Shown here: positions 1 to 20,068 of the stretch, piece after piece
Numbering within the stretch: the stretch's first letter is position 1
Layout of the letters: the number at the start of each line of letters is the position of its first letter
Assembly (NCBI RefSeq): GCF_006345805.1
Contig: NW_021827511.1
Location: 1 to 28,563 of the forward strand
Direction of reading: 5' to 3'
DNA from: Octopus sinensis
Lineage: Eukaryota
Length of the DNA: 28,563 bases
Notes under the pieces: generated by a model
Database searches by the model: none
The model's input: only the letters and a program-made list of their open reading frames with translations
Told to the model about the DNA's origin: nothing
Translations under genes and position numbers: made by a program

Positions 1-133
1 ATATATATATATAACATCTAATATAGGATAGAATTTTTCGAAAAAAATTCTATCAATGGCCAGCATATTAAAAAATACCTTTAAAGGTTAAATTTATAAA
101 CAATTTATAAGTAAGGCTTGCCCTTACTTATAA

Positions 134-134
134 A

Positions 135-175
<41 letters not shown>

Positions 176-381
176 TATGTATGTATGTATGTGTGTGTGT
201 GTGTGTGTCTGTGTTTGTCCTCCCCATCATCACATGACAACCGATGCTGGTGTGTTTACGACCCCGTAATTTAGTGCTTCGGTAAAAGAGACCGATAGAA
301 TAAGTCCTGGGGTCGATTTGTTCGACTAAAGACAGTGCCCCAGCATGGCCGTAGTCTAATGACTGAAACAAATAAAAGATA
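134..381 (+). mobile_element. SINE family A, 3' half with internal microsatellite
   Basis: gacaaccgatgctggtgtgtttacg...gagaccgatagaataagt...ccccagcatggccgtagtctaatgactgaaacaaataaaaga is the reverse complement of the copies at 4451-4879 and 27329-27681. Confidence 0.8.
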
Positions 382-589
382 CATATATGAGAGGTAATCT
401 TTAGCTTAGTTTAACCCCACCATCTGGCCCTTAGATATCTTCAAGAGAATCCACGGTTGCAAGAATTCGGACCAAGTCTTCTGCTTAAGGATAACTTAAT
501 TCGCACCTCTATCCCAGTCTCAGAGGTCATTGGTAGTTCCTTTCATTCAGTGACTGAAAATTGAAGTCTGTCTCGAGTCCTTGGACTCA

Positions 590-790
590 TTGAGATGGTT
601 ACCCTGTTTTCATGACGTCTAAATGACCGAGATCGCAACATACCCCGTGAACTGGACGCAAGTCCATTGCAGAGTTATTCATTTAGAGCTGAGTGAACTG
701 GAGCAATGTTGAATAAAGTATTTTGCTCAAGAACACAATGCACCACTCGGTCTGGGAATCGAAACCACGACACCACGATCCAGCGAGTGT
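590..790 (-). mobile_element. Old tRNA-derived SINE: CORE-like segment plus V-domain-like body
   Basis: Minus strand reads gtttcgattcccagaccgagtggtgcattgtgttcttgagcaaaatac...ttgctccagttcactcagc (shared with 22316-22643), then aactctgcaatggacttgcgtccagttcacgggg (similar to the body of 14326-14640). Confidence 0.6.
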
Positions 791-1351
791 GAGTACAACA
801 ACCTACTCGATACGCAACGCACTTTTACCCACTAATTAAACTATTGATTAAATATGATATAAAAATCATTAATGTAAATTCAAATTAATCACGAAATTAG
901 CTCTGCATATTTTACTAAAATCGTTGCTTCAGATTGATCAAAAGTTTCAATTAACAGATCTTGTGGAGATTATCTCCCCATTTTATCAAAAATATATATT
1001 CTAGAAAAAGAGAGATGTACCCAAGCGCCTTCGAAGCCCCTCTCCCCGCCCAACAGCCAATAAGGTCGACAAGGTTTAGCATTCCTCTTTACAAGCAGGA
1101 AATCGAAGATTGCTTAGAGGAAGTCTTTTTCTAGTAATTGTTAGAATAATTTCCATTTCTCGAGATTTATCAACTCACCCCCTGTATTCCATATGTGAGA
1201 CTCTGCCATACTTGTATTTAGTAAGCAGAGCTACCCCAACACCTCGACAGGCATTTTCGTATTTTTGTCCTTCGGCCATATTGAGTATACAGAATATAAT
1301 TTTACGCTGAATAATCTTAGCAGCTAAGTCATTCATAATAATGTGTAAGAT

Positions 1352-1553
1352 CTTCTCAAAACAGCGCCCTGGTGGTGATGGTGGTAGTGGCAGCAGTGGT
1401 GATAGTGATGGTGGTGGTGATGATGGCGGTGGTTGTGGCGGTAGTGGTTGTTGTGATGTTGGTGTTGTAGAGGTGATGGTAGCGTTGGTAGTAGATTTGG
1501 AGATGTTGATGGTGATGGTGATTATAGCGGCACTGTTGGTAGCGGTTGTGGTG
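1352..1553 (+). repeat. Degenerate (GGT/GAT/GGC)n trinucleotide low-complexity tract
   Basis: ggtggtgatggtggtagtggcagcagtggtgat... runs; produces the Gly/Val-rich ORF 1341-1571. Confidence 0.8.
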
Positions 1554-1757
1554 GTCTACCGTGAAATATAATGTGAGGTATCTTTCTCAAGTTTTCTTTA
1601 TGAAATACAGGTGGTGATGGATGGATTCTATTACCTGTTGTTTGTTATTTGAACCTTGACCTTTGATTTCTTCTGATCGAGCAATCCTACCTACAAAAGC
1701 ATTGCAGCCGTAAGAAATCCGCCATTTTACTTGTTGCTTGTACGACATTATCTAATC

Positions 1758-1995
1758 CAGTCGTTCTCAACCTTGGGTATCCAGATAAGATTTTGTTATT
1801 ACAACTTATGAGCAATAAATTGCTCATACTTTTATAGTACACAAAATATTTTAACAATTTTTAAATATATTTCCTAATAATATTTGATTATGAAAATATT
1901 ATAGGATTTTTTAAACAGCGAATGTTTATGAGGGTCCACATGAATAAAATAGAAATCAAAGGGATCCATGGATTAAAAATGATTAAGAAACACTG
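1758..1995. mobile_element. hAT/Charlie-type MITE (degenerate)
   Basis: Left end CAGTCGTTCTCAACC; right end reverse complement CAGTGTTTCTTAATC (11/15 match). Flanks atctaatc and atccaagc match 6/8, compatible with an eroded 8-bp TSD. Confidence 0.55.
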
Positions 1996-2157
1996 ATCCA
2001 AGCTGTTCTTCCTCGGTTTTTAAAGACGGTAAAACCTATACACACACACAGATATATGCACATATTATAAGCACTACAGAACATCGACTATATCCATATT
2101 AGAACGTTAGAATGGGTAGGTGAATGTCATGGGTACATACTTTCCTTTCTAAGTAAG

Positions 2158-2168
2158 CCATAAATAAA

Positions 2169-2234
<66 letters not shown>

Positions 2235-2438
2235 GTTTCAAATCTTGCCACAAGGCCAGCCATTTTAGGGGAGGGGATGAGTCGATTACATCAACACCAG
2301 TTTTCACTGGAACTTAATTTATCGACCCCGAAAAGATGAAAGGCAAAGTCGACCTCGGCGGAATTTGAACTTAGAACGTGAAAACGGACGAAATACCGAT
2401 AAGCATTTCGCCTGGCGTGCTAACAATTCTGCCAGCTC

Positions 2439-2440
<2 letters not shown>
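2158..2440 (-). mobile_element. SINE family B copy with tail type ii and (TTA)n/(TTTA)n tail
   Basis: gtcgattacatc...tttatcgaccccgaaaagatgaaaggcaaagtcgacctcggcggaatttgaac...gcatttcgcctggcgtgctaac...ctgccagctcg. Minus strand has a tRNA-like head with B-box GTTCAAATTCC. Confidence 0.85.
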
Positions 2441-2500
<60 letters not shown>

Positions 2501-2503
<3 letters not shown>

Positions 2504-2733
2504 AATAATAATAATAATGGTTTCAAATTTTGCCCCAAGGGCAGTCAATTTTGGGGGAGGGAATGAGTCGGTTACATCGACCCCAGTGTTTCACTGGAAC
2601 TTAATTTATCGACCCCGAAAGGATGAAAGGCAAAGTCGACCTCGGTGGAATTTGAACTCAGAACGTGAAGACGGACGAAACACCACTAAGCATTTCGCCC
2701 GGCGTGCTAACGATTCTGCCAGTTCACCGCCTT
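2501..2733 (-). mobile_element. SINE family B copy, tail type ii
   Basis: Near-duplicate of 2158-2440; minus-strand head aaaggcggtgaactggcagaatcgttagcacgccgggcg. Confidence 0.85.
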
Positions 2734-2736
2734 TAT

Positions 2737-2776
<40 letters not shown>

Positions 2777-2995
2777 TAGAGTCAAAGAGAAGCTTGTGGA
2801 GACTTGAAACCGACCCTTTAACCTTTGTGGCCAACATTAGTTAAATATCAAAGAGATGCGGCGAAGTCTTACGTGTTTACACGGAAAACAACGAAAGCGG
2901 CCGACATTGTTGACATTCTGTCAACGAAATCAGAGCAAACATGTTTCTTCACTGTTTTCAAGTCTACTGCCTGAACCTACCACCGCTTGCATGGA

Positions 2996-3318
<323 letters not shown>

Positions 3319-3326
3319 TTGTGATC

Positions 3327-3497
3327 CCCTTCGATTATGAATGACCATGGGATTGCACCTAGAAAGTTACCCCCCGTGGTACAAGTCCGGGCAAGATTGT
3401 TTATGCATACTGGCCTCCCCTCTCCATGCCACCGATTTTATTCAAAGGAAAGGCAAAGGCCGATACAGCTTGGCACCAGTGACGTTGCAACTAATTT
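3327..3497 (-). mobile_element. SINE family E, 3' portion
   Basis: cccttcgattatgaatgacc...gattgcacctagaaagttaccc...ggcaaaggccgatacagcttggcaccagtgacgttgcaact matches 22316-22505. Confidence 0.8.
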
Positions 3498-3804
3498 ATT
3501 AACGTGCAAGTGACTGAGCACTCCACTGATACGTGTACCCTTAACGTAGCTCTCGGGGAGATTCAGCGTGACACCGAGGGTGACAAGGCTGGCCCCCTTT
3601 GAGATACAGGTACAACAGAAACAGGAAGAATGAGTGAGAGAAAGTTGTGGTGAAAGAGTACAGTAGGGTCCCCCCTCCCTGCCAGAGCCTCGTGGAGTTT
3701 TAGGTGTTTTCGCTCAATAAACACTCACAATGCCCGGTCTGGGAATCGAAACCGCGATCCTACGACCGCGAGTCCGATGCCCTAACCACTGGGTCATTGC
3801 GCCT

Positions 3805-3808
<4 letters not shown>
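3498..3808 (-). mobile_element. SINE family D (tRNA-like head, body type 2), 3' truncated
   Basis: Minus head gtggaggcgcaatgacccagtggttagggcatcggactcgcggtcgtaggatcgcggtttcgattcccagaccgg; body matches 24933-25318. Confidence 0.85.
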
Positions 3809-3843
<35 letters not shown>

Positions 3844-4450
3844 TACATATATATCTTGTATATAGATGGCAATTTCTGTGTCTGTTACCATCTCACGGTC
3901 TAAATCAGCGAACCAATCTTCACGAAAGTTTGCATACATGTTAAGCTAATATCCAGTTCAATTACAGGCTAATTTGATTTCAATAAAAATCGCTAGTGGG
4001 CCCCCTACGGGGGCTGGGCTATTATATGATAGAATGAGAAAGGTACAAAAGTATTAGCGTGAGGGAAATGTGGTGGTTGATACAATGAGGGTGACTGATA
4101 TCAGAGAAGGGGAGGAAACAAAAAGATATAGAGGGCGAGATAGGGGACACTGAGCAGGAAAGAGAGAGAGAGAGAGAGAGAGAGAGTGTGTTTACTGAAT
4201 TTTTACCTATCAGTTAACGCATGCGCTTTAGTGAATTAACTATCGTCTGCTCAGTCAAAACTTTTAAATCTCCAACAACAGATGTAAAACTAACAAGTGA
4301 AGAGCAAAGTGTTTTTATATTTGTTTTCAAATCACCGTATTTATTAAAATTTTACCAATGTACTGAAACAAGAAAACTGAAGATAATGTCTTTCATTTTC
4401 TTCCATAGATGAATAAATAGCCTGTCGTTGTCGGGCAATTTTTACAATTC

Positions 4451-4675
4451 TTTTCTTTCTTTCTTTTACTTGCTTCAGTCATTTGACTGCGGCCATGCTG
4501 GAGCACCGCCTTTAGTCCAGCAAATCGACCCCAGAACTTATTCTTTGTAAGGCTAGTACTTATTCTATCGGTCTCTTTTTGCAAAACCGGTAAGTTGTGG
4601 GGACGTAAACACACCAGCATCGGTTGTCAAGCGATGTTGGAGGGACAAGCACAGATACACAAACATATACACACA

Positions 4676-4714
<39 letters not shown>

Positions 4715-4879
4715 GACGGACTTCTTTCAGTTTCCGTCTACCAAATCCACTCACAAGGCTTTGATCGGCCCGAGGCTATAGTAGAAGACACTTGCCTAAG
4801 GTGCCAACGCAGTGGTTCTGAACCCGGAACCATGTGGTTGGTAAGCAAGCTTCTTACCACACAGCCACTCCTGCGCCTA
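4451..4879 (-). mobile_element. SINE family A, full length (tRNA-like head, CORE-like segment, internal (TA)n, LINE-like 3' tail)
   Basis: Minus head aggcgcaggagtggctgtgtggtaagaagcttgcttaccaaccacatggttccgggttcagaacc..., then ggcaccttaggcaagtgtcttctac; 3' end ggcggtgctccagcatggccgcagtcaaatgactgaagcaagtaaaagaa. Confidence 0.9.
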
Positions 4880-4897
4880 TAATAATAATAATAATAA

Positions 4898-5389
4898 TCT
4901 TATATAAATTTCTGTTTATTTTATGTCAGACCATGCCTTCCTTTACAGATAGGTCTCTGAACCTGCTTTTTCCTATGGCCAACTGTATGTAGGATACTCA
5001 AGTGTCAGCAAACCAAATCAGTTATTTATTTATGCTCCAGAGGACATGATCAAATATGTAGTATACCAAGAGGCTCTACAAAATTGCTAGTAATCGGTCA
5101 TCAATCAATCGTTTCATACTCGCACATCGTGAACCCTCTCATCCGTCCAACCATCCACCAGTTCAACTTTGATATTACCTTACCATTTCAATCAATTAAT
5201 TTTATGATTCAACTGCATTATTTCCCAGTATTTGTAAATCTATCCCACGTCACGGTGTATTTGTAAATCTATTTGAAATATTTAAACGGGAAATGAATAG
5301 GGAACAGGATAGGACATGAAACAGTGTAATGGGAACGGGAACTGGAAATAACACCCGTTTTTCCGGGTAGTACCGGGTAATTCAGTTAG
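4898..5389 (+). mobile_element. Possible non-autonomous Helitron-like element (degenerate)
   Basis: Starts a|TCTTATATAAA and ends ...ccgggtagtaccgggtaattcagTTAG|t, resembling the clearer element at 23710-24104; terminal CTAG appears as TTAG. Confidence 0.4.
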
Positions 5390-5548
5390 TATATATATAC
5401 ACTAGCGGAGCTAGTGTGTGTGCGTGTAGGGGCGATAGGGGCGGTACTTTTGGGTCTGCTGTAGACATGTGTTTTTTGTGAGGTCCGGGGGGGGGCACAC
5501 TCTCTAGCTATGCTAGTGTGCGTGTGTGTGTATATATATATATGCACA

Positions 5549-6281
5549 CACCAGATCATCACAGATCCTCTATGTTTAACAGCTGGAAGAATGCAGTCTG
5601 GGTCAAATGCTTCCTTTGGCTGCCGCCACACGTATATTCGGCCGGTGGCCGGAAATAAGGTAAAGGATGTCTCGTCCGAGTAAATAACATTCTTCCACTG
5701 CTCTAGGGACCAGTTCTGTAGGTTTTTACTCCACTCTAAACTCTTTGCAACGTTTGTTTTTGAAAGTAGTGGTTTTCTGATTGCAGCCCTCCCGTGAAAT
5801 CCGGCTTTGTGCAGCTCCCGGCGAACAGTTTTTGTAGAAACTAGGTTATCGAGGAGGTCATTAAACTCTGCAGTAATTTTGGGAGCTGTACTTTTGTGAT
5901 CCTTTCTAACAATTCGCGTAAGAGTCCGGCGGTGCCTATCTGAAAGTTTTGGTTTTCTTTCGGAGTTTTGTTTCGACGAGTAGGTTTCTCAAAGGGTGTC
6001 AATACTTTCGAGACAGTATTTCTTGATACACCAAACATTTCAGCTGTTTTCGTTACGCTAGCGCCTACCATACAAGCACCAACAATTTGACCTCTTTGAA
6101 AGTCCGATAGATCTGTCATTTTAATGAATTTTAATTACCTTTTTCTGATGTCTGAAAAGAAACAGTAATTTTAGCAAAACATATTAAGCAACACAAATAA
6201 TAAATCCCAAAACAAAAATAAACAAGCTTTTGATGGTTTTATTTCAAAATTATGATGGTCTGATGCTAGGTGTTTCCATTG
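5549..6281 (-). mobile_element. Tc1-family DNA transposon, 5' half with frameshifted transposase (pseudogene)
   Basis: MTDLSDFQRGQIVGA...GVSRNTVSKV (HTH, start 6119); frameshift near 5985; RKPKLSDRHRRTLTRIV...VSTKTVRRELHKAGFHGRAAIRKPLL...WKNVIYSDETSF (first catalytic Asp 5674-5676)...VWRQPKEAFDPDCILPAVKH..GSVMIW, then truncated. Outer end TA|CAATGG at 6281-6283. Confidence 0.9.
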
Positions 6282-6327
6282 TATACATAAATACATACAT
6301 ACATACATACTACATACATACCATACA

Positions 6328-6358
<31 letters not shown>

Positions 6359-6383
6359 CATACAAATAATATATATATATATA

Positions 6384-6446
<63 letters not shown>
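6282..6446. repeat. (TACA)n then (TA)n microsatellite
   Basis: Directly visible. Confidence 0.95.
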
Positions 6447-6448
<2 letters not shown>

Positions 6449-6525
6449 CGATGAAGAAGCAACAAGAAATGGATAGGTTGTTTAGTACGATCGTTTCATA
6501 CAAGGACAGGTTTATTAAAAGTTGC

Positions 6526-7399
6526 AAGGTTACAGCATAAAACGAGTCCCGTACTCATAGCTAAAATACATGTAAGTTCTCTAGACATCCTAGTGTTTGA
6601 GGCTATACTCATGAAGTAATGTAGATAATTAAACAGATTTCTAAAGTTCATTAAAGTTCTTTAAAGATGATGTAAGTCTTATCACAGAATATTAAAAAAG
6701 TTTTGATAGGCATCACAGAGAAGGTGACCTAATCCATATGAATTTCCATAGATATGATGAGGGAATATACTCACAGAAGACAAATTTATCCATTGTTATT
6801 AGCATTACAGAGAGGGTGAATTATCCTTTGTATATATGCACAGATTCCAATGGTGTAGATGTTAAATTTCCAGAGAAATGGAGATGAATTTCATATTCAC
6901 AGGCGATAAATTTTTACAATGGTTGAACACATGAGGTAGGTACCAATCCTTGTTACCTATAACATTGGTACCTATAACAAGGATTGGTACCTACCTCATT
7001 GTGTTCAACATTGTAAAATTTATCGCCTGTTGAATATGCAATTCATCTCCATGTTTCTCTGGAATTTACATCTACACCATTGGAATCTGTGCATATATAC
7101 AAAGGATTAATTCACCCTCTCTGTATGCTAATAACAATGCATAAATTTGTCTTCTGTGAGTATTAATCCCTCATCATATCTATGGAAATTCATTGGATTA
7201 GGTCACCTTCTCTGTGATGCTATCAAAATTTTTTAATATTCTGTGATAAGACTAACCTCCATTTTAAAGAACTTTAATGGAACTTTAGAAATCTGTTTAT
7301 TATCACATTACTTCATGAGTATAGCCTCAAACACTAGGATGTCTAGAGAATTACATGTATTTCACATGATGAGTGGGACTCTTTTATATCTGTAACCTT
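6526..7399. repeat. ~880-bp imperfect palindrome (two ~430-bp inverted arms, 19-bp spacer)
   Basis: Arm 6526-6955 is the reverse complement of 6975-7399, e.g. gaggtaggtaccaatccttgtta (6933-6955) and taacaaggattggtacctacctc (6975-6997); spacer 6956-6974. Confidence 0.95.
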
Positions 7400-7877
7400 T
7401 GTCAATGTGTTAATAAAACCGGAACCTGAGGTGTCCTGTATGAAACGATTTTACACTAAAAACCTATCCATTCTTGTTGCTCTTTCTCGCTATAATCAAC
7501 CCACTTACTGTATGTTAAATCAGTATAGTTTTTTTTGGTGCATCATAAGTTACTGTACCATCTTCAATAAATTTTTATTAAATACTATGAATCTTTATAT
7601 GCTATTATATATATATATATATATATATAATATATTAATTATTATCCTAGTATTGATAATTCGGTTAATCGATACCTGGTAGCAAATTCACGTCAGAAAA
7701 CACGGTTGAAGCTACATGTCAAGGGCAGAAACCTCGTGTTCTTGTGTGGTAATTTGTGTGTTTTTTTTATATGAATAAATGAAAGAATGGAGTCGAACGA
7801 AGATTTCCTACCCTTTCACTGTTCTTCGCTCGCAAGAAAAAAAACAAAACAAAAAAAAAAACAGCAACAGCCTTACT

Positions 7878-8050
7878 CATTGGTTTCAAATGTTGGCACT
7901 AGACCAGCAATTTCGAGAGAGGGAGTAAGTCGATTACATCGACCTCAGGGCTCAACTGGTTCTTTTTTTTATCGACTCTGAAAGGAGGAAAGGCAAAGTC
8001 GACCTCGTCGGAATTTGAACTCAAACTGTATAAACAGATGAATTGCTTCT
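7878..8050 (-). mobile_element. SINE family B copy (tail ii, degenerate, lacks head) just upstream of the acceptor
   Basis: ggtttcaaatgttggcac...gtcgattacatcgacc...aaggcaaagtcgacctcgtcggaatttgaactc. Confidence 0.8.
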
Positions 8051-8114
8051 TAGGATGAATGAAAATATGATTTTGTATTTGTATTTCATTAATTAAATTC
8101 CAGTAATTGAAATG

Positions 8115-8139
8115 ATTTTGTTTTCTTTCTCTTCCATAG
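8115..8139 (+). promoter_or_regulatory. 3' splice acceptor (polypyrimidine tract + AG) of the hydrolase exon
   Basis: attttgttttctttctcttccatag|gt directly precedes the coding-like sequence; the ORF-track N-terminus MILFSFSSI is just the translated pyrimidine tract. Confidence 0.8.
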
Positions 8140-10163
8140 GTGTGTGTGTTGATCATCAACTGCCAACCAATAAATCATTTGATGAGGCATTCAATAAATT
8201 TTTGAACAAACATCAGTACGAAGGGGCAGCGATTGCTTTATCACGACATGGCAAACTTATTTATGCCAGAGGTTACGGGAAATTGCATAAAGAACACAAA
8301 ATCACCCCAGAAACGTTGTTCCCGGTTTCAAGCATTGCCAAGATGTTTACTGCAGTCTCCATTCTGAAATTAGCCGAAGAAAACAAATTGGTGCTCTCAA
8401 ATAAAGTATTTGGTAAAAGAGGAATTTTAGGTCATTTGAAACCGTGGGGCGCTCATCATACTGACAAACTGTTGTATGATATAACAATTGATGATCTGCT
8501 GCGCCACGCTGCTGGTTGGAACGCAAACAAACCACCTCTGTTTGATCCTCTGCTGAACTCTGTATATTTATCTAAAGGCTACCGTGTACCCAACATAACT
8601 GACATCATGAAGTTATCTCGACCATTAGAACTGAGAGACGTCATCAGATATGTCATTTCCCTTCCTCTTCACGATCGACCAGGTACACACTCAACATACT
8701 CAAATTTTGGTTACGTCATATTGGAACGAATTATCGAGAAGGTACAAGAGTTAGGCTACGCTGATTTTGTTCGTAAGAACATTCTGGAGCCGTGTGGTAT
8801 GTGGCATACAAAGGGTAGCATCGCTAACCACCACCATGATGAGAAAAACAAGAAGAACGGTGCTGTATTACATATGCCGTCCAATACCTTACATGCTCCA
8901 CCAGAACATGCCAGAGTTGAATGGCACTCCAACGTTTATGATGTAATGCGCTTTTCTCGTTGTTTGGATTATTCTGGCGACCATCATCTTCTCAACGCGT
9001 CCGGAGTAAGAATGCTCTTGGAGAAACCAAGCCGTGTAGTTGGACATGTCGATAGTTGGATGGGAGCTGGGATCAATGTCAACAAACATGGCCATATTTG
9101 GCAAGAAAGTGACATGAACACAGATGATATGCTCTTTTATCATAAAGGATTGTTGAAGTCTATGCATAAACACCACAACTCAACACATTCGTCAGCTGAT
9201 GCATTTGTGATGCTGTTAGTTGGAAGAAAGAACAAAAATTTATTCAACAAAGAAATTTTACATTTTGCAAAGAATTTTGATCTTCATACTCCTGATTATT
9301 TCAATTACGATCTCTCAGACATTCAAATTGGTACTCCAGCCGAAGGATCGCGTATCGTTAAGTATCAAGTACCAGAGAGACATATTTCAGCATATGTTAG
9401 TGCCATCCGAGAACAAGACTTTAAAGTGGAATGGATTAGTGCTTATGAGTTTAAAGAAAAAACCTTTTTCAGTGTTATAGCCCACTTTAATCCTGGTCAA
9501 ACTCCAGACGCCTTCTACCTCGAACATGGTTTAGAGGAAAAGAGACTTCTACATTACAAGCATGTCTACGCAGAAAGTCATGCCTACCTGAAATTGATAC
9601 AAACATATAAAAGTTATTCACACGGAGGCACGCAAAAATATATGGCACTTTTTAACAAGGAAAGCGAACCCCCAGTGGATATTAAATTCGGAATTCGGCA
9701 ATATTCTCAAAGTTATAAACTCTTCGCTCATGTATATAACGAGAAGGGTTACGTTCCGAGGATTCAAAGTTTTTTCCACATAAACCACGAGCCATTGGTA
9801 TGCTTTATTCTGGAAAAGAAACCCATTAAATTTTCTAAAGAGTATATGAATATCAGTTTACGAGATCTTATCTTTAGTATGAAGCTAAATTTCAAATCTG
9901 GCCGAGTCATGACATACCTGGATTCCTCAAGCCGCTATAAAAAACCTCGATTTTCGGTAATTTATCGCAGAGACACTACCAGACAAGGTCTCTTTAAACA
10001 TAACCTTACTGCTTCAGGTGTAGGTGAAGTTATCGCTTATCATTACTTTAGAGGAAGCTATTTCCCGAAACTGCTTGTGGGTTACGTAAATAAGAAGGGC
10101 GTTTTGCATTATGCCGTTTATCTTGAGCGAAAAACTTCTTTAAAAAACAAAAAAGTGAACTAA
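8140..10163 (+). CDS. Large terminal coding exon: beta-lactamase-related (PBP/class C-like) serine hydrolase domain plus five C-terminal polyglycine-hydrolase-like (BTRD1-like) repeats; true start probably in an upstream exon
   Basis: 683-codon ORF 8112-10163 with normal amino-acid complexity. Motifs: GAAIALSRHGKLIYARGYG, FPVSSIAK (SxxK, Ser codon 8331-8333), LLRHAAG (8496-8516), YSNFGY (Tyr codon 8697-8699), ILEPCGM. Five ~50-aa repeats at residues ~414-673 (9351-10130). The first 9 codons are a polypyrimidine tract ending in TAG at 8137-8139, so the exon starts at 8140 in phase 1. Stop TAA 10161-10163. Confidence 0.9.
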
Positions 10164-11202: not shown

Positions 11203-12864
11203 TTGATTGATTGATTGATTGATTGATTCTAGTTTCAGCCCATGAGCTGTGGCCATGCTGGGGCACCGCCATTTGGTATTGCTACTTGGTTTCACTTCAC
11301 GAAAGCTTTCTAGCAGCTGCCATTTGGTGCATGAGAGAGTTCGATGCAGCTGCCCTCATCTGCCCCTCCTGCCGTGAAGTTGGTTCATCTGGGACACCTG
11401 ACAGGAAGAGATCCAGCTTCATTTTAAAGACATCTGCATCCACCCCATGCAGGTCTCTCAGGTTCTTCGGGAGGATATTGAAGAGCTGTGAGCCTCGGAA
11501 GCCCAGGCTATCACAGAATCTTGTCCTACATCTTGATGGCAAGTTTGGAGTCCTAGGCACCACGCAGTGGCGCCCAGTTCTGGCATTTGCGTAACTCTCG
11601 ATGCCAAAGTTCAGGACACGTCCCTCCAGGATCTTCCAGATGTATATTATGGCATATCTTTCCCGCCTACGCTCCAGGGAATATAGTTTTAATCTCTTGA
11701 GTCTTTCCCAGTAGCTTACATTCTGCATAGAGGCTATCTTCGTGTAGCTACGTTGGATCGCCTCGAGCTCTGTGAACAACTTGACACTGGATGGTGACCA
11801 TAACTGAGAGCAGTAGTCAAAGTGGCTTAGGACAAGTGTCCTCCAGAGGACCATCATGGTTTCTTGTTCTCTTGTTCTAAAGGTTCTGAGGATCCATCCG
11901 GCCAGTCGTCTACATTTCATTGCCAATTTAGCAACATGTACACGAAAGGTCGCGTCATCACTCATGTAAATACCCAGGTCACGCACTGATTGTGCCTCTG
12001 GGATTGCTATTCCTCCGGGTCCAGTGTATTCATTGGGTATTGCATTTAGTTTTGCATGCTGATAGTATAGAGCTTGAAACTTTTCAGCATTGAACTGCAT
12101 GCTATTCTTTTCGGCCCACTTGTATATTTTGTCCAGCTCACATTGCAGGTGTTTAGTGTCCTCAGGGTTCTGTATTGCCTGTGAAACTTTTGTATCATCT
12201 GCATAACTTGTGATCGTGGCTCTCTGCGTGGCTGAGGGCATGTCTGAGAGGGCCATTATGAACAGTAGTGGTCCCAGAACAGTGCCCTGCGGAACACCGC
12301 TCACTATTTGCATGTTAATGGAAGTGGCCTCATTGGCTACTACCACCTGACTTCTATCTTTCAGAAAGTCATGAAGCCATTCTCCCAGTTTTCCAACTAT
12401 GTTGAGATCACGCAGTTTGTGACATATCATTCCATGATCGACTTTATCAAAGGCCTTTGCAAAGTCGAGATATATCACTTCCACATTTGAGTGGTTGAGC
12501 AGCCGTTTCAGCACCCAGTCATAGTGTTGTAGGAGCTGAGTTAAACAGCTTCTCCCTGGTCGGAAACCATGTTGGGTGTCGGGCAGCAAGTCATTCTCTT
12601 CAAGGAAGGTGATCAGCTTCCTTCTGACTATCGTTCCATGACCTTGCTGATGTGTGAGGTCAGAGAGATAGGTCTATAGTTCTTGGCTTCCGCTCTGCTA
12701 CCTCCTTTATGAATGGGGCATATTTTACCTTCCTTCAGTTTTCTTGGAAGTTTGCCAGCTGCAAGGAAGCTCTGAAAGAGGAACTGCAGTGGTCTTGCTA
12801 GGACTCTCTTACATGCTTTTAGGAGGATTGCCGGGAATCCATCGGGGCCAGTAGCTGATTTTAG
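11203..12864 (-). mobile_element. 5'-truncated CR1/L2-group LINE: reverse transcriptase, 3' UTR and (AATC)n tail
   Basis: RT motifs QHGFRPGRSC, YLDFAKAFDKVDH, SGVPQGTVLGPLLF, YADDTK, VRDLGI and C-terminal ERRRERY...IWKIL. The frame extends upstream across a 1-nt deletion near 12631 (ER/IVRRK) to KSATGPDG...NYRPISLTSHISKVME. Stop TGA 11297-11299; tail repeat 11203-11228. Confidence 0.92.
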
Positions 12865-12914: not shown

Positions 12915-13189
12915 CATGTACTATGGGAAAAAAAAGAAAAAAAGATGATAGCACATACCTCAGAAAAGGTCTCAGAAAATGTCAAAAGCAGCCATTCTCT
13001 GGGAATTGTATGCCAGAAGAGAATCTGTTGGTTATTGTTGTCAAGGACTACAAAAAAACAAACAAACAAACAAACAAACAAAAAACCCAAAAAACAAAAC
13101 AAAACAAAACGACTGCCGTCTAATCGAGATTTCAGTCCCAATATATGATAATAACAAGAAATTGAGAGATTATCGAAATACAAAGCATG

Positions 13190-13431
13190 CAATAATCCTT
13201 TCCACTATAGGCACAAGGCCTGAGATTAGGAGGGAGGGGATGAATCGATTACATCAACCCCAGTATGCCACTGGTACATAATTTATCGACCCCGAAAGGA
13301 TAAAAGGCAAAGTCGACTTCGCGGAATTTGAACTCAGAATGTAGCGACAGGCGAAATACCGAAAAGCATTTTGTCCGATGCGCTAACGATTCTACTAGCT
13401 CACCGTCTTCACAAAGCATCCAATGATAATA

Positions 13432-13503
<72 letters not shown>
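13190..13503 (-). mobile_element. SINE family B copy (tail ii) followed by a long (TAA)n
   Basis: aatcctttccactataggcacaaggcctgag...aaggcaaagtcgacttcgcggaatttgaactcag...gctaacgattctactagctcaccg; (TAA)n 13425-13503. Confidence 0.85.
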
Positions 13504-13504
<1 letters not shown>

Positions 13505-13505
<1 letters not shown>

Positions 13506-13605
13506 CCTGGTGTGCCCTTATCAGACGGGTAGTCATGATGGGTATACTGGGCTTCGTATATTTTACCCCAGTGTCACTTTGATGGCATGCACTGCTCTCT
13601 CACTC
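13505..13605 (+). mobile_element. ~100-bp segment flanked on both sides by (TAA)n; probable 3' end of a 5'-truncated retroelement
   Basis: Unique-looking gcctggtgtgccc...gcatgcactgctctctcactc between pure TAA arrays; no coding signal. Confidence 0.4.
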
Positions 13606-13650
<45 letters not shown>

Positions 13651-13683
13651 TGTAGTAGTAGTAGTAGTAGTAGTAATTTTTAA

Positions 13684-13803
13684 GAATACAATGTGATACC
13701 AATGGTGATTGGTATTCTTGGAAGTATCAGTACCCAGCTACCAACATGACTCAAAAGACTGGTACAGATGTAAATATAGAACACCTACAAAAATCATCAT
13801 TGA
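13684..13803 (+). pseudogene. Short C-terminal fragment of an RLE-type non-LTR element
   Basis: EYNVIPMVIGILGSISTQLPT*LKRL/(G)TDVNIEHLQKSSL matches the post-endonuclease VIPxVIGALG...LQKxxL motif of R4/Dong-like proteins. Confidence 0.65.
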
Positions 13804-14325
13804 ATCCGGTTATAAATATCTGGGAATACTTGAGGCAGATGGAATTAAACACAACGATATGAAAGAAAAGATAAAGGAAGAGTACCTGTGGTGAGTGAGA
13901 AAAATATTGGCTTCAAAGATGAATGCCAGAAACATAATTTCGGCAATAAACTCGCGCGCAGTCGCAGTAGTTCGGTATGGCGCTGGAATGCTGAAGTGGA
14001 GAGACGAGGAGCTAAAGGAAGGTAAGAAAGCTCCTAACGATGCATGGAGCCCATCATCCGCATGCAGACATTGATCGCCTATATATATGAGGAGAGCAAG
14101 TGGAGGAAGGGGGCTGGTAAGTGTGGAAGACTGCGTACGTTTCCAACACGGGAGCTTAACGAGATACCTATCCCAACGTAAGGAGACCTTGCTAGTGTCA
14201 GCTGGGAGTGAGGGAGTATTAAAACCAGAGAAAAGAGGAAAAACAAAGGAAGAATTACAAAAAGGACATGAAGAAGAATTACGCCAGAAGGAACTACACA
14301 ACTAATTCCATGTAGCCACAACAGA

Positions 14326-14640
14326 TAAACGATAACGGTCGCCCTTTTCAAGCCTAGCCAGGCTCATGGGCCCGGCTTCCCGGTTTCTGTGGAGTATGTG
14401 TTCCCCCCAGCTGGACGGGACGCCAGTCCATCGCAGCGTTACTCAAGAAACAGGAAGAAAGAGTGAGAGAAAGTTGTGGCGAAAGAGTACAACAGGGGTC
14501 GCCACCACCCTCTGCCGGAGCCTAGTGGAGCTTTTAAGTGTTTTCGCTCAATAAACACACAACGCCCGGTCTGGGAATCGAAACCGCGATCCTCCGACCG
14601 CGAGTCCGCTGCCCTAGCCACTGGGCCAGTGCGCCTCCAC
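14326..14640 (-). mobile_element. SINE family D (body type 1, V-domain-like) with 12-bp TSD
   Basis: tRNA-like head at 14640; body ttgagtaacgctgcgatggactggcgtcccgtccagctgggggg...cagaaaccggg; TSD agccacaacaga (14314-14325) / agtcacaacaga (14641-14652). Confidence 0.9.
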
Positions 14641-15358
14641 AGTCACAACAGAAGTTGCTGGAAAACATAGGTGGGATTGGCTGAAGAAAGGAACACTGAA
14701 AAAAGAGACCGGAGAGCACTATTCTGGCAGCGCAAGACCAAGCTTTGGCTACGAATTGGAGGGTCAACCGTAAGAATGAGCAAGTATCTTCGCTGTGTCG
14801 CATCTGCATTAGAGTGGATGAAACTATTGCCCACATCACGAAAGAATGCACTACACTTGCCCAAAACTACTACAAATTGTGGCGACACGATGAGGTAGTG
14901 ATAGTGTTACATTGTGCGAAAAGTGGGGGCTAGAGAGAGGTAAGACGAGGTATGAGCACAAACTGCCGAGAGTGGCGGAATCGGAGACTTGCAAAACCCT
15001 GTGGGATTACCCAATTCAAACAGATCAGGTGCTAGAGCATAATAGACCGGACTTAGTGGTGGTGGACAAGATGCACCACATGTGCTATATAGTTGACGTT
15101 GCATGTCCCTTCGACCCACGAATAATCAAGAAGGAAGGGGAAAACGTAGATAAATACGACACAGTAAGTACGAAATAGTCCGGCTGTGGAAAATGAAGGT
15201 GAAGATAATGCCAATTATTGTTGGGTCAGAAGGCATCAAGAGGAATATAAAGGAAATCGGAATAGAGTGCCCAGTAGAACTGCTATAAACGGTTTTCTTC
15301 CTTGGCACGGCCATAATAACCAGGAAAGTGTTAGATAGCTGAAAAGAACAAATAGCAT

Positions 15359-15598
15359 GATACCTATTTCTTTACTACCCACAAGGGGCTAAACACAGAG
15401 AGGACAAACAAGGACAGACAAACGGATTAAGTCGATTATATCGCCCCCCAGTGCGTAACTGGTACTTATTTAATCGACCTCGAAAGGATGAAAGGCAAAG
15501 TCGACCTCGGCGGAATTTGAACTCAAAACGTAGCGGCAGACGAAATACAGCTACGCATTTCGCCTGGCGTGCTAACGTTTCTGCCAGCTCGCCGCCTT
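15359..15598 (-). mobile_element. SINE family B, tail type i, inserted in the Dong-like 3' UTR
   Basis: tatttctttactacccacaaggggctaaacacagagaggacaaacaaggacagacaaacggattaagtcgattata...ctgccagctcgccgcctt; gatacc on both sides. Confidence 0.9.
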
Positions 15599-15739
15599 CG
15601 ATACCGATACCATAATACCGTAGGCCGCAGGTAGCAAGCCCGGTACGTATTGTAAGACTTCAGGAGTTACAACAAGACCTGAGATAAAAAGAATAATAAT
15701 GATGACGACGATGACGAAAACAACAACATTGATGATAGA

Positions 15740-16031
15740 CTCTCCTATCGAAGACGGCGAATGAGCTTTTTAGCTTTTGCCGAACAACCTACACAAATGA
15801 TTTGTTTATAAGAATCGAATGTATGTGTCGCACATTAACTCACGTCTTCCATCAAAGCGACGTTGGATGAACAGGTGCACGGTGTCTACCACACGTCAGG
15901 TGTCGAAATGATCACGGAACAACGTGAGATGAAGTGTTTTGCTTAAAAACATAACGCACCACCTGGTCTAGGAATTGAAATCACGATCGCTAGACCATGA
16001 GTGCAACACCCTAACCACAACGCCATGCGTC

Positions 16032-16032
<1 letters not shown>
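15740..16032 (-). mobile_element. Degenerate tRNA/CORE-like SINE with a further distinct body (family F)
   Basis: Minus head aagacgcatggcgttgtggttagggtgttgcactcatggtctagcgatcgtgatttcaattcctagaccagg...gttatgtttttaagcaaaacacttcatctcacgttgttccg. Confidence 0.6.
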
Positions 16033-16126
<94 letters not shown>

Positions 16127-16185
16127 AGTAATAATAATAATAATAATATAATAATAATAATAATATAATAATAATAATAATAATA
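16033..16185. repeat. (TAA)n-(TGA)n-(TAA)n compound microsatellite
   Basis: Directly visible. Confidence 0.95.
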
Positions 16186-16391
16186 AAAATACTCTCTATG
16201 TAATCCCAAGGTTGAAAACAAATTTTTTTTATGTATTAGACATTCACTAGTACAACACCAAAAAAAAAAAACGCCAAATATATGGCACACTAGGCATAAC
16301 AACAGCGTGAACTTCCAACCTGTTGTCTCTTGAGGTCTCTGGGTGAGACTTGGAGCCAACTTGTACAGACATAAAGCAAAAGTCAAACATA

Positions 16392-17095
16392 GAATAATAA
16401 TAATAATAATAATCCTTTTTTCTAAAGGCATAAGGCCTGAAGTTTTTTGGGAGGTAACAAGTCGATTAGATCAATCCCAGTACGCAACTGGTACTTAATT
16501 TATCGACCCCGAAAGGATGAAAGGCAAAGTCAACCTCGGTGGAATTTGAGCTCGGAACGTATAGGCGGAAGAAATACCGGCGGAATTTGGACCCCAGAAC
16601 GTGAAAACGGACAAAATGCCGCAAGTATTTCGCCCGGCGTACTAACGATTCTGTCTGCTCTCCCTCCTCTTTTGGAAGCAAAAATTTTATTTCTGTATTG
16701 CCCACAAGGGACTAAACATAGAGGGGACAAACAAGGACCGAGAAAGGGGTTAGGTCGATTGCATCGACCCCAGTGTGTAACTGGTACTCAATTTATCGAC
16801 CCCGAAAGGCAAAGTCGACCTCGGCGGAATTTGAACTCAGAATGTAGCGGCAGAAGAAATACCTATTTCTTTACTACCCACAAGGGGCTAAACACAAAGA
16901 GGACAAACAAGGACAGACAAAGGGATTAAGTCGATTATATCGACCCCAGTGCGTAACTGGTACTTAATTTATCGACCCCGAAAGGATGAAAGTCAAAGTC
17001 GACATCGGCGGAATTTGAACTCAGAACGTAACGGCAGGCGAAATACCGCAAAGCATTTCGCCCGGCGCGCTAACGTTTCTGCCAGCACGCCGTTC
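16392..17095 (-). mobile_element. Head-to-tail cluster of three SINE family B units
   Basis: Repeated aaggcaaagtc(g/a)acctcgg(c/t)ggaatttga; tails ii, i, i; junction agaaatacc|tatttctttactaccc at ~16860. Confidence 0.9.
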
Positions 17096-17905: not shown

Positions 17906-18104
17906 CAGGCATACTACTGAAATATTTTAAAGAAAAACCATTATTAGCTTTTCAACAATAAGCCCCTTGTATTTATGTGTGTGTGTGTGTATACGCAACA
18001 GCATACTTTCTTGTCTGTATAATATCTCCGTATATTTATTTATTACGACTGTAATGCGTTCCTTCCTTTCACAGTATTTGTTACCCAGGTGGAGATTAAA
18101 GAAT

Positions 18105-18110
18105 ACATAG

Positions 18111-18187
<77 letters not shown>

Positions 18188-18253
18188 TATTATTATTATC
18201 ATCATCATCATCATCATCATCATTCTCATTATTATTATTATTATTATTATTAG

Positions 18254-18286
<33 letters not shown>

Positions 18287-18326
18287 TATTATTATCATTA
18301 TTATCATCATCATCATCATCATTCTC

Positions 18327-18358
<32 letters not shown>

Positions 18359-18393
18359 CATCATCATCATCATCATCATCATTATTATTATTA

Positions 18394-18444
<51 letters not shown>

Positions 18445-18512
18445 GCATCATTATTATTATCATTATTATTATTATTATTGTTGTTGTTGTTGTTGTTACT
18501 ATTATTATTATA

Positions 18513-18558
<46 letters not shown>

Positions 18559-18570
18559 TATTATATTATT

Positions 18571-18601
<31 letters not shown>

Positions 18602-18622
18602 GTAGTAGTAGTAGTAGTAGCA
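18105..18622. repeat. Large compound trinucleotide array (TAA)n/(TTA)n/(TCA)n/(TTG)n/(TAG)n
   Basis: Directly visible; source of the poly-Ile/Met ORF 17927-18463. Confidence 0.95.
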
Positions 18623-18904
18623 GAAGAAGTAAAGTGGCGAAAGAGGCGAAGAAGTGCAAGAAGGAGCGTTACAATGATTCCGAAGGGTTTCGTACATCCC
18701 CGCCCATCTCCGGTCTGTCGTCTGCTCGTTGTTATATGTTCGTTGTTATTCCTCACTAAACTAAAACCAGATGCCATTGTGGTTCCTTACCAGAACAAAC
18801 ACATGGATTCCAGAATATTTTTTTTTCTCCCTATTTTCCTTTTCTGGGAAATTTTCTTTGTATTTAACATCGTCTACTTTCTACATGGTTTTTAACGCTA
18901 ATGG

Positions 18905-18938
18905 CGTCTGTGTGTGTTTGTGTGTGTATATATATGTG

Positions 18939-19016
<78 letters not shown>

Positions 19017-19255
19017 TGTATATGTGTATGTACACACACATACATGTATGAATGTATGTTTATATGCAAGACTGAATATGTATTATTTTTACTTATGTAC
19101 ATGATGGATATATGGATATATGCATGCATATACATACATACATACATACATACATACATACATACATACATACATACATACATACATACAACATACATAC
19201 ATACATATGTATGTATGTATTGTATGTATGTATATATATATATATACATACATAC

Positions 19256-19286
<31 letters not shown>

Positions 19287-19306
19287 TGTATTGTATGTAT
19301 GTATAT

Positions 19307-19398
<92 letters not shown>

Positions 19399-19536
19399 TG
19401 TATATGTGTATGTACACACACATACATGTATGAATGTATGTTTATATGCAAGACTGAATATGTATTATTTTTACTTATGTACATGATGGATATATGGATA
19501 TATGCATGCATATACATACATACATACATACATACA

Positions 19537-19567
<31 letters not shown>

Positions 19568-19572
19568 GTATG

Positions 19573-19620
<48 letters not shown>

Positions 19621-19625
19621 CATAC

Positions 19626-19656
<31 letters not shown>

Positions 19657-19677
19657 GTATGTATGTATGTATGTATG

Positions 19678-19719
<42 letters not shown>

Positions 19720-19862
19720 ATAATATATATATATATACATACATACATACATGTGCGTATGCACTTGTGTACGTACATATTTTACACGCGCACACACACA
19801 TACACACACACAAACACAAACACACACACACACACACACACCACACACACACACACTTACAC
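18905..19862. repeat. Microsatellite block containing a 382-bp-period tandem duplication
   Basis: Core cacacacacacatgtatatgtg...gcaagactgaatatgtattatttttacttatgtacatgatggatatatggatatatgcatgc starts at 19005 and again at 19387. Confidence 0.92.
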
Positions 19863-20068
19863 ACCGCCTCTCACCGTAACAGGGATCGTTTTTTTTAGAA
19901 ATTTCAGATTGCTAAAATCGTAAAACAATCTTCTTTGTCTCAAAGACAATTATTATATATTCCTCGTTCTTCCATTTTACCATTCCTATATTCCTCTCAT
20001 CTTTTGTTTTCTATGGGAAATGTTTTCTTTGCAACTGTAGAGTGGATGAAAACCCAAACACTATTAGC

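Follow-up and report, generated by a model that had tools for sequence, protein, structure and literature searches.

The 28,563-nucleotide stretch of Octopus sinensis DNA analysed here (positions 1 to 28,563 of contig NW_021827511.1, assembly GCF_006345805.1, forward strand; hereafter, the window) contains a gene whose product combines two modules. A serine hydrolase domain of the penicillin-binding protein (PBP)/beta-lactamase fold comes first and is followed by a barrel of five structural repeats. We have very little doubt about this architecture, or about the homology that links the repeat domain with BTRD1 of bacteria and with the N-domain of polyglycine hydrolases (PGHs) from fungi. An initial annotation of the locus, made from the letters of the sequence, had already proposed a hydrolase followed by five PGH-type repeats, in reversed order relative to fungal PGHs. 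That proposal is borne out by the fold match to the fungal PGH structure 7tpu, by BTRD1 profiles and by profile-profile alignment with HHalign.

In the window the gene appears as a single unbroken frame on the forward strand (8112-10163), which gives 683 aa in the open reading frame (ORF) translation. From VCVDHQLP on, this ORF agrees in full with P0001, an annotated O. vulgaris protein of 693 aa. The N-terminus of P0001, which starts MDYRNLSFCATLLIALFTSS, departs from the ORF exactly at a splice acceptor: an AG at 8138-8139 precedes position 8140, and the sequence reads ttttctttctcttccatag|GTGTGTG, that is, a polypyrimidine tract and then AG. Since the N-terminus of P0001 is unlike the start of the ORF, the ATG at 8112 represents translated intron and not a start codon. 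The apparent start and the first nine codons (MILFSFSSI, 8112-8139) are the translated polypyrimidine tract of intron 1, and position 8140, at which the initial annotation had begun the gene, is a true exon boundary. A search of window positions 1-8139 did not find exon 1; it was located instead on the reference chromosome of O. vulgaris (locus L001), where the signal-peptide exon (ATGGATTAC...ACGTCGA|GTAAGT) lies about 29.3 kb 5′ of the large exon. Compared with the reference locus of O. vulgaris, the window exon has 2 changes in 2024 nt, both synonymous. The octopus gene is intact, with an open frame and only synonymous differences from the reference, and neither the window nor the 71-kb reference locus L001 contains a second copy or tandem paralog. 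The parts of the gene are as follows.

8120-8139, + strand: 3′ end of intron 1, with polypyrimidine tract and AG acceptor, phase 1 (sequence reading, comparison with the N-terminus of P0001)
8140-10163, + strand: last coding exon, comprising the end of the signal-peptide region, the entire mature protein and the TAA stop at 10161-10163 (ORF, comparison with P0001 and L001)
8178-9149, + strand: serine hydrolase domain of the PBP/class C beta-lactamase/DD-peptidase fold, residues 23-346 (PF00144, E=1.6e-39)
8331-8342, + strand: motif 1, S74-I-A-K77, with the predicted nucleophile Ser and general-base Lys (counterpart of S343-V-S-K346 in the fungal PGH Fvan-cmp)
8697-8705, + strand: motif 2, Y196-S-N198 (counterpart of Y447-S-N449 in Fvan-cmp)
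9057-9065, + strand: W316-M-G318, inferred counterpart of the third motif, KTG/HxG (position in the model, family conservation)
9351-9488, + strand: repeat unit 1, residues 414-459, E-H-E-E, i.e. strand, helix, strand, strand (AlphaFold2 (AF2) models, HHalign)
9513-9656, + strand: repeat unit 2, residues 468-515, E-H-E-E (AF2 models, HHalign)
9675-9818, + strand: repeat unit 3, residues 522-569, E-H-E-E, the unit that diverges most, its loop at 526-534 modelled with low confidence (AF2 models, HHalign)
9834-9971, + strand: repeat unit 4, residues 575-620, E-H-E-E (AF2 models, HHalign)
9981-10133, + strand: repeat unit 5, residues 624-674, E-H-E-E (AF2 models, HHalign)

The hydrolase domain and the five-repeat domain

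The N-terminal half of the protein matches PF00144 over residues 23-346 with 136.5 bits against a cut-off of 27 (E=1.6e-39). SIAK (S74-K77), LLRHAAG and YSN (Y196-N198), the motifs from which the initial annotation had recognised a PBP/beta-lactamase fold, are all found in the protein. Judged by these residues, the acylation machinery looks intact, with Ser74 as the predicted nucleophile, Lys77 and Tyr196 as the bases, and Asn198. On the first strand after the helical subdomain (strand 315-318 in the model) lies W316-M-G318, whose Trp is nearly universal across the animal family described below. We infer from the model that this tripeptide corresponds to KTG/HxG, the Gly having been kept and the basic residue replaced by Trp.

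As for relatives of known structure, the family profile lies closest to Flp (4gdn, 4e-32), Pab87 (2qmi, 3e-30) and Fvan-cmp (7tpu, 2e-28), and also to alkaline D-peptidase (4y7p). When the octopus catalytic domain itself is compared with PDB sequences, the best matches are Pab87 (2qmi), the catalytic domain of the PGH structure 7tpu and Flp (4gdn). These nearest solved relatives (Flp, Pab87, PGH and alkaline D-peptidase) are peptidases or esterases, not true beta-lactamases. Foldseek places the full model in the neighbourhood of PBPs, DD-peptidases, family VIII esterases and LACTB. Outside the family, the nearest relatives of the catalytic half are single-domain bacterial hydrolases of COG1680 from Planctomycetota, Verrucomicrobiota and Acidobacteriota (about 143 bits). 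The sampled bacterial fusions of a beta-lactamase domain with BTRD1 reach only 13-60 bits against the animal catalytic half, and the fusions with the domain order of PGHs, P0262 and P0308, score below the single-domain hydrolases.

The C-terminal half is far less conspicuous at the sequence level. Pfam leaves residues 394-683 unrecognised, and PF17660 (BTRD1) gave no match at E<=10 for the full protein, the C-terminal half or any of the units, so that the direct match to this hidden Markov model (HMM) envisaged in the initial annotation fails for the octopus protein. Among its relatives, the Aplysia protein P0121 does pass PF17660 (24.2 bits vs a cut-off of 23). Two AF2 models, one of the full-length protein (predicted local distance difference test score, pLDDT, 76.6; predicted template-modelling score, pTM, 0.82) and one of the C-domain alone (pLDDT 84.7, pTM 0.85), both contain, with high confidence, five E-H-E-E units, at residues 414-459, 468-515, 522-569, 575-620 and 624-674. 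These boundaries agree within a few residues with the five units, to be looked for by AlphaFold, that the initial annotation had read from the sequence. The pTM of 0.82 for the full-length model suggests that the two domains are packed in a defined way.

Plain HMMs of the individual units, run against the protein, produced no cross-matches to other units. With profiles built from 45 family sequences, however, HHalign aligns units 1, 2, 4 and 5 mutually in register at 92-97% probability, and unit 3 with unit 1 at 86%. As a control, 35 comparisons with 50-aa segments of the catalytic domain peaked at 3.2%; with in-register values of 86-97% against at most 3.2%, the repeat signal is above chance.

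The relationship to PGHs became apparent from the fold. A profile of the C-domain found no meaningful match among PDB sequences. In contrast, the Foldseek search of the PDB with the C-domain model, a comparison suggested in the initial annotation, returned chain 7tpu_A (Fvan-cmp) with E=2.2e-6, probability 1.0 and a TM-score of 0.66 over 271 columns. The aligned region is the N-domain of the fungal enzyme, and this was the sole significant fold match in the PDB, the runner-up having E=0.08. In the full-length Foldseek search the catalytic half dominates, and 7tpu is not among the best 50 matches. The N-domain of Fvan-cmp has been described as built from five 44-residue EHEE structural repeats whose sequences have little in common (PMC9912923).

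Profiles connect the octopus domain with BTRD1. An exhaustive profile search with the mollusc C-domain collected 214 proteins. Of the 73 that were sampled, 72 carry PF17660 BTRD1, 33 a Beta-lactamase domain and 25 Peptidase_M23. Bacterial BTRD1 proteins are already within reach of phmmer when the octopus C-domain is used as a single query sequence, with scores of 40-51 bits. When the mollusc profile is set against a bacterial 5xBTRD1 profile, HHalign aligns 245 columns with all five repeats in register (probability 99.8%, E=1.6e-27). A chain of sequence matches extends from there to the N-domain of 7tpu: the BTRD1-type protein P0231 matches 7tpu residues 17-78 at E of about 1e-4, and unit 5 of the octopus protein has a weak in-register match to 7tpu residues 210-262, i.e. 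to PGH repeat 5.

In bacteria, BTRD1 is most often joined to Peptidase_M23 or beta-lactamase-fold domains. The partners seen in the bacterial relatives include Peptidase_M23 (25/73), the beta-lactamase fold, glyoxal/galactose oxidase, M57 peptidase, CHAT, calpain, CAP, LGFP and PASTA, a variety which suggests that the barrel may be a general targeting or binding module of secreted enzymes. The PGH N-domain fold has been reported to be present in all kingdoms, with a top-50 list made up only of fungal and bacterial proteins (PMC9912923), and a 2026 preprint reports a red-algal cuticle protein with this fold.

The animal family and its origin

At 50% identity, the proteins that share the order of the octopus protein (a signal peptide, then the catalytic domain, then five repeats) fall into about 37 clusters; they are 600-740 aa long. 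Named members come from five phyla: Mollusca (Octopus, Argonauta, Aplysia, Haliotis, Tegillarca, Solemya, Candidula and Bulinus), Nemertea (Lineus and Tubulanus), Echinodermata (Antedon), Hemichordata (Glandiceps) and Cephalochordata (Branchiostoma, amphioxus). Since many members are metagenome or Sequence Read Archive (SRA) contigs, this range of taxa should be read as a minimum. In the annotations, the named members are without exception uncharacterised or hypothetical proteins. The initial annotation knew of no functional description in animals, and a literature search that included gene and run identifiers and cephalopod proteomes likewise found no description of the animal family.

Nearly all members have a hydrophobic N-terminal signal sequence. 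Given these N-termini and the signal-peptide exon, the octopus protein is very probably secreted. Cephalopod orthologs are found on contigs of 2.5-4.4 kb, the size of mRNAs, which hold the complete spliced coding sequence and are consistent with transcripts. The 4.4-kb Logan contig SRR21372859_25557 (L002), which contains the full spliced coding sequence of P0003, carries an Illumina adapter at both ends. The adapters are an assembly artefact, and a contig of this kind is consistent with an RNA-seq-derived transcript.

For all 57 members compared, with the family defined by architecture, the best match of the catalytic domain beyond close orthologs is another family member and never a bacterial protein. 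On the basis of these best-match patterns and the shared architecture, the catalytic-then-repeats fusion in animals appears to have a single origin. A word-indexed homolog search with the C-domain profile found only 3 proteins, the diverse family profile added no named animals to it, and a contig scan with P0231 as the query gave no match.

Both orders of the two modules occur outside animals. The PGH order is found in P0262, from a gammaproteobacterial metagenome-assembled genome (MAG), and in P0244, P0308 and P0326. The octopus order is found in P0231 and in P0167; the latter comes from a bacterial MAG and has a relative in a Calditrichaceae MAG. To judge from these proteins, the beta-lactamase-then-BTRD1 order is not unique to animals. 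Since, in addition, the catalytic half is nearer to single-domain bacterial COG1680 hydrolases, the comparisons indicate that the animal protein is not a rearranged fungal PGH and that the same two modules were combined several times. The "domain-swapped metazoan counterpart" of the initial annotation thus describes the architecture correctly, but not the descent, which does not lead to a fungal PGH. Earlier work covers each module and the fact that they occur together. We found no description of the animal family itself, of the reversed domain order, of an apparently single origin shared by the bilaterian phyla or of the repeated decay of the catalytic site.

The decay is extensive. Among 45 family members, SxxK is intact in 19, YxN in 20 and both in about 15. 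The nucleophile has changed to Asn in P0005-P0009, a clade of cephalopod paralogs to which O. bimaculoides LOC106876528 belongs, and other members carry Asp, Ala, Gly, Gln or Glu in its place; SLSE/LSD is found in the protein from Branchiostoma. Roughly two thirds of the members lack the Ser and/or the Tyr, yet they keep the signal peptide and the five-repeat barrel. At the level of sequence, this pattern looks like repeated evolution of pseudo-enzymes, and since live active sites occur alongside dead ones, some members probably work by binding alone, catalysis having been lost. The window copy and its orthologs P0002-P0004 retain SxxK, YxN and W-x-G.

As for the rest of the window, about 1.1 kb past the stop codon of the gene there is a retrotransposon fragment, a 430-aa ORF with an RVT_1 domain (11297-12589, - strand; E=3.5e-23). 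On the other side of the large exon, 2236-2439 and 2547-2771 are interspersed repeats of about 160-200 bp, with more than 20 copies in the 71 kb of L001, at 82-90% identity and on both strands. They probably belong to an element resembling a short interspersed element (SINE) or a miniature inverted-repeat transposable element (MITE) that populates the long intron. The block at 13000-17000 is unlike its flanks, with a positive AT skew of +0.20 to +0.26 and a GC content of up to 0.50; its ORFs have no significant Pfam match, and it may be another transposable-element remnant. The region 18000-20000 is strongly AT-rich (GC 0.23-0.25). Its overlapping ORFs of 180-267 aa on both strands have 0 Pfam matches and are probably low-complexity or repeat sequence rather than genes.

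Possible function and alternative explanations

We propose the following scheme. The signal peptide encoded by exon 1 would direct the protein out of the cell, where the repeat barrel may bind an extracellular peptide or ester, or act as an exosite for it, and so bring it into position. Cleavage via a Ser74 acyl-enzyme intermediate would follow in the catalytic domain, which is of MEROPS S12 type, and the resulting activity would be that of a peptidase or esterase and not beta-lactam hydrolysis. The gene itself belongs to a marine-bilaterian family, old and apparently of single origin, in which the two modules were fused catalytic-then-repeats independently of the fungal enzymes. The retained motifs tip the balance, if not by much, towards this octopus copy being catalytically active. 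The role assigned to the barrel, substrate binding or an exosite function, is one that has so far only been suggested for the N-domain of PGHs (PMC9912923); the unrelated C-terminal domain of Lip3, a Paenibacillus DL-peptidase, does fulfil it. Neither PGH (PMC9912923) nor Lip3 has nitrocefin activity. Glycine-rich and D-amino-acid/peptidoglycan-type peptides appear to be the most attractive substrates, both because BTRD1 is recurrently fused to M23 and PBP-fold domains and occurs with PASTA and LGFP in bacteria, and because D-stereospecific peptidases are among the nearest catalytic relatives. Nevertheless, we name a glycine-rich or D-amino-acid/peptidoglycan-type peptide as the substrate only tentatively, as a guess that may well be wrong.

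Several points weigh against this scheme. The barrel as a substrate-binding module would be an assumption, even for the N-domain of the fungal enzymes. The widespread loss of Ser or Tyr in the relatives shows that the fold, as judged by these substitutions, can persist without catalysis. At the inferred third-motif position the protein has W-M-G and not KTG/HxG, the putative equivalence coming from the position in the model only, and the AF2 models were built on only 12 sequences. Finally, there is no direct Pfam BTRD1 match, and the homology of the repeat domain is visible only via family profiles and fold.

It is conceivable that the protein is a true PGH, that is, a Gly-Gly endopeptidase functionally equal to the fungal chitinase-modifying proteins, only with its domains swapped. 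The two modules are the same, the PGH catalytic domain ranks in the top three among relatives of known structure, the second motif, Y-S-N, is identical and the first reads S-x-S/A-K in both. Moreover, bacterial BTRD1 is also often fused to peptidases of the M23 family, which includes glycyl-glycine endopeptidases. We nonetheless regard this explanation as improbable: in comparisons with the catalytic half, every BTRD1 fusion is outscored by single-domain bacterial COG1680 hydrolases, the reversed domain order means that the geometry of barrel and active site must differ, the third-motif Gly site is Phe in PGH but, by our tentative assignment, Gly318 in octopus, and the known PGH substrate, a plant chitinase linker, has no obvious animal counterpart. 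By analogy with peptidoglycan recognition proteins (PGRPs), one may also imagine a role in immunity: once secreted, the protein would recognise peptidoglycan peptides of bacteria or trim them, the live members acting as effectors and the dead ones in pattern recognition. The catalytic fold is DD-peptidase/PBP-like and has D-stereospecific peptidases as relatives, the protein is secreted, active sites in the family are partly intact and partly dead, BTRD1 in bacteria is joined to the cell-wall-related modules M23, PASTA and LGFP, and the family is confined to marine invertebrates, which rely on innate immunity. Yet the case is wholly circumstantial, and we consider it unlikely to be correct.

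The loss of Ser and/or Tyr in about two thirds of the family, together with the apparent absence of a canonical KTG, raises the question of whether this octopus copy is itself a non-catalytic binding protein, a pseudo-enzyme. However, the octopus copy and P0002-P0004 keep SxxK, YxN and W-x-G, whereas the sister paralog clade P0005-P0009 lost them; retention on one side and loss on the other implies selection to keep the motifs, and a pseudo-enzyme at this locus seems a poor bet. The Pfam Beta-lactamase match and weak NCBIfam class C matches might be taken to indicate a genuine beta-lactamase shielding the animal or its microbiota from beta-lactam antibiotics. This is very improbable: the NCBIfam bla_class_C score of 42.3 bits falls far short of the equivalog cut-off of 415, no KTG motif is apparent, and nitrocefin is not hydrolysed by PGH or Lip3, the closest relatives that have been characterised. 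Bacterial contamination, a very recent horizontal transfer or a pseudogene might be suspected from the mature protein lying in a single exon and from the bacterial origin of the nearest non-animal catalytic relatives. Against this stand the spliceosomal intron of about 29 kb with canonical GT...AG ends, the separate signal-peptide exon, the location on a 182-Mb chromosome, flanks with metazoan repeats and a reverse-transcriptase fragment, the intact frame with purely synonymous polymorphism, and orthologs and paralogs in five phyla. Contamination and pseudogene readings are effectively refuted, and we give this whole group of explanations next to no weight. An ancient transfer into an early animal may have occurred.

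Our preferred reading, a secreted S12-type peptidase or esterase carrying a repeat barrel, would be of interest for several reasons. To our knowledge, animals are not known for secreted S12-type serine hydrolases, apart from mitochondrial LACTB as the animal member of this type. The conservation of a secreted family from molluscs and nemerteans to echinoderms, hemichordates and amphioxus may point to an unexplored extracellular activity in peptide processing or microbe recognition. The five-repeat barrel of PGHs is widespread, and in the animal family it is always attached to a PBP-fold domain that seems sometimes active and sometimes dead, which offers a natural experiment on the binding target of the barrel. 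With peptidoglycan or D-amino-acid peptides as the substrate, these proteins would form a new class in invertebrate immunity or peptide metabolism. If the protein is an ordinary esterase, the interest would be mainly evolutionary, as a convergent, independent fusion of the same modules in fungi, bacteria and animals. A bolder version, which we hold to be speculative and unlikely, is that in this ancient bilaterian family the BTRD1 barrel targets cell-wall peptides (D-Ala stems, glycine bridges), with live members being bacteriolytic or muropeptide-trimming and dead ones acting as pattern-recognition receptors. Were this true, it would reveal an unrecognised PGRP-like arm of invertebrate innate immunity and provide the first function for the BTRD1/PGH N-domain fold.

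Comparison with known systems

The fungal PGHs (Fvan-cmp, 7tpu; Bz-cmp and Es-cmp) resemble the octopus protein in being secreted and in combining a five-repeat E-H-E-E barrel with a serine hydrolase of the PBP/class C fold. In both, SxxK and Y-S-N are present; a canonical KTG is not apparent in either. On the other hand, the barrel is N-terminal and the catalytic domain C-terminal in the fungal enzymes, whereas in octopus the catalytic domain comes first. The identity between the octopus barrel and that of 7tpu is only 11%, and the third-motif site is Phe in PGH but, at the inferred position, Gly in octopus. Furthermore, the octopus catalytic domain is closer to bacterial single-domain hydrolases, and its host is an animal.

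Bacterial BTRD1 (PF17660) proteins share with the octopus protein a homologous five-repeat domain (HHalign 99.8%) and a signal peptide, and two of the bacterial MAG proteins, P0167 and P0231, even have the same catalytic-then-repeat order. However, the catalytic domains of the bacterial fusions are only distant from the animal one (13-60 bits), and the octopus C-domain, unlike the bacterial BTRD1 proteins, stays below the Pfam BTRD1 threshold. The closest catalytic relatives by both sequence and fold are the 'CubicO' serine hydrolases of COG1680 from bacteria and archaea (Pab87, 2qmi), together with Flp of S. aureus (4gdn) and alkaline D-peptidase (4y7p). Pab87, Flp and alkaline D-peptidase lack the BTRD1 barrel, and Pab87 has a different C-terminal domain and is an octamer.

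LACTB has the same superfold and is also an animal protein; it is mitochondrial, forms filaments and has no repeat barrel. Its matches to the octopus catalytic domain are short, with E of about 4e-7, while the best matches reach 1e-16 to 1e-17; LACTB was rejected as the source of the family for being too distant. The Lip3/Lip7 DL-peptidases of Paenibacillus (9sn1) are like the octopus protein in having an N-terminal S12-type hydrolase followed by an accessory C-terminal domain. The C-terminal domain of Lip3 was considered as a relative of the octopus C-domain and rejected, as Foldseek found no match between the folds. It is beta-rich, forms a substrate cleft and has been reported to be Paenibacillus-specific, in an enzyme without beta-lactamase activity. 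Lip3 provides a precedent for a C-terminal accessory domain that shapes the specificity of such a hydrolase.

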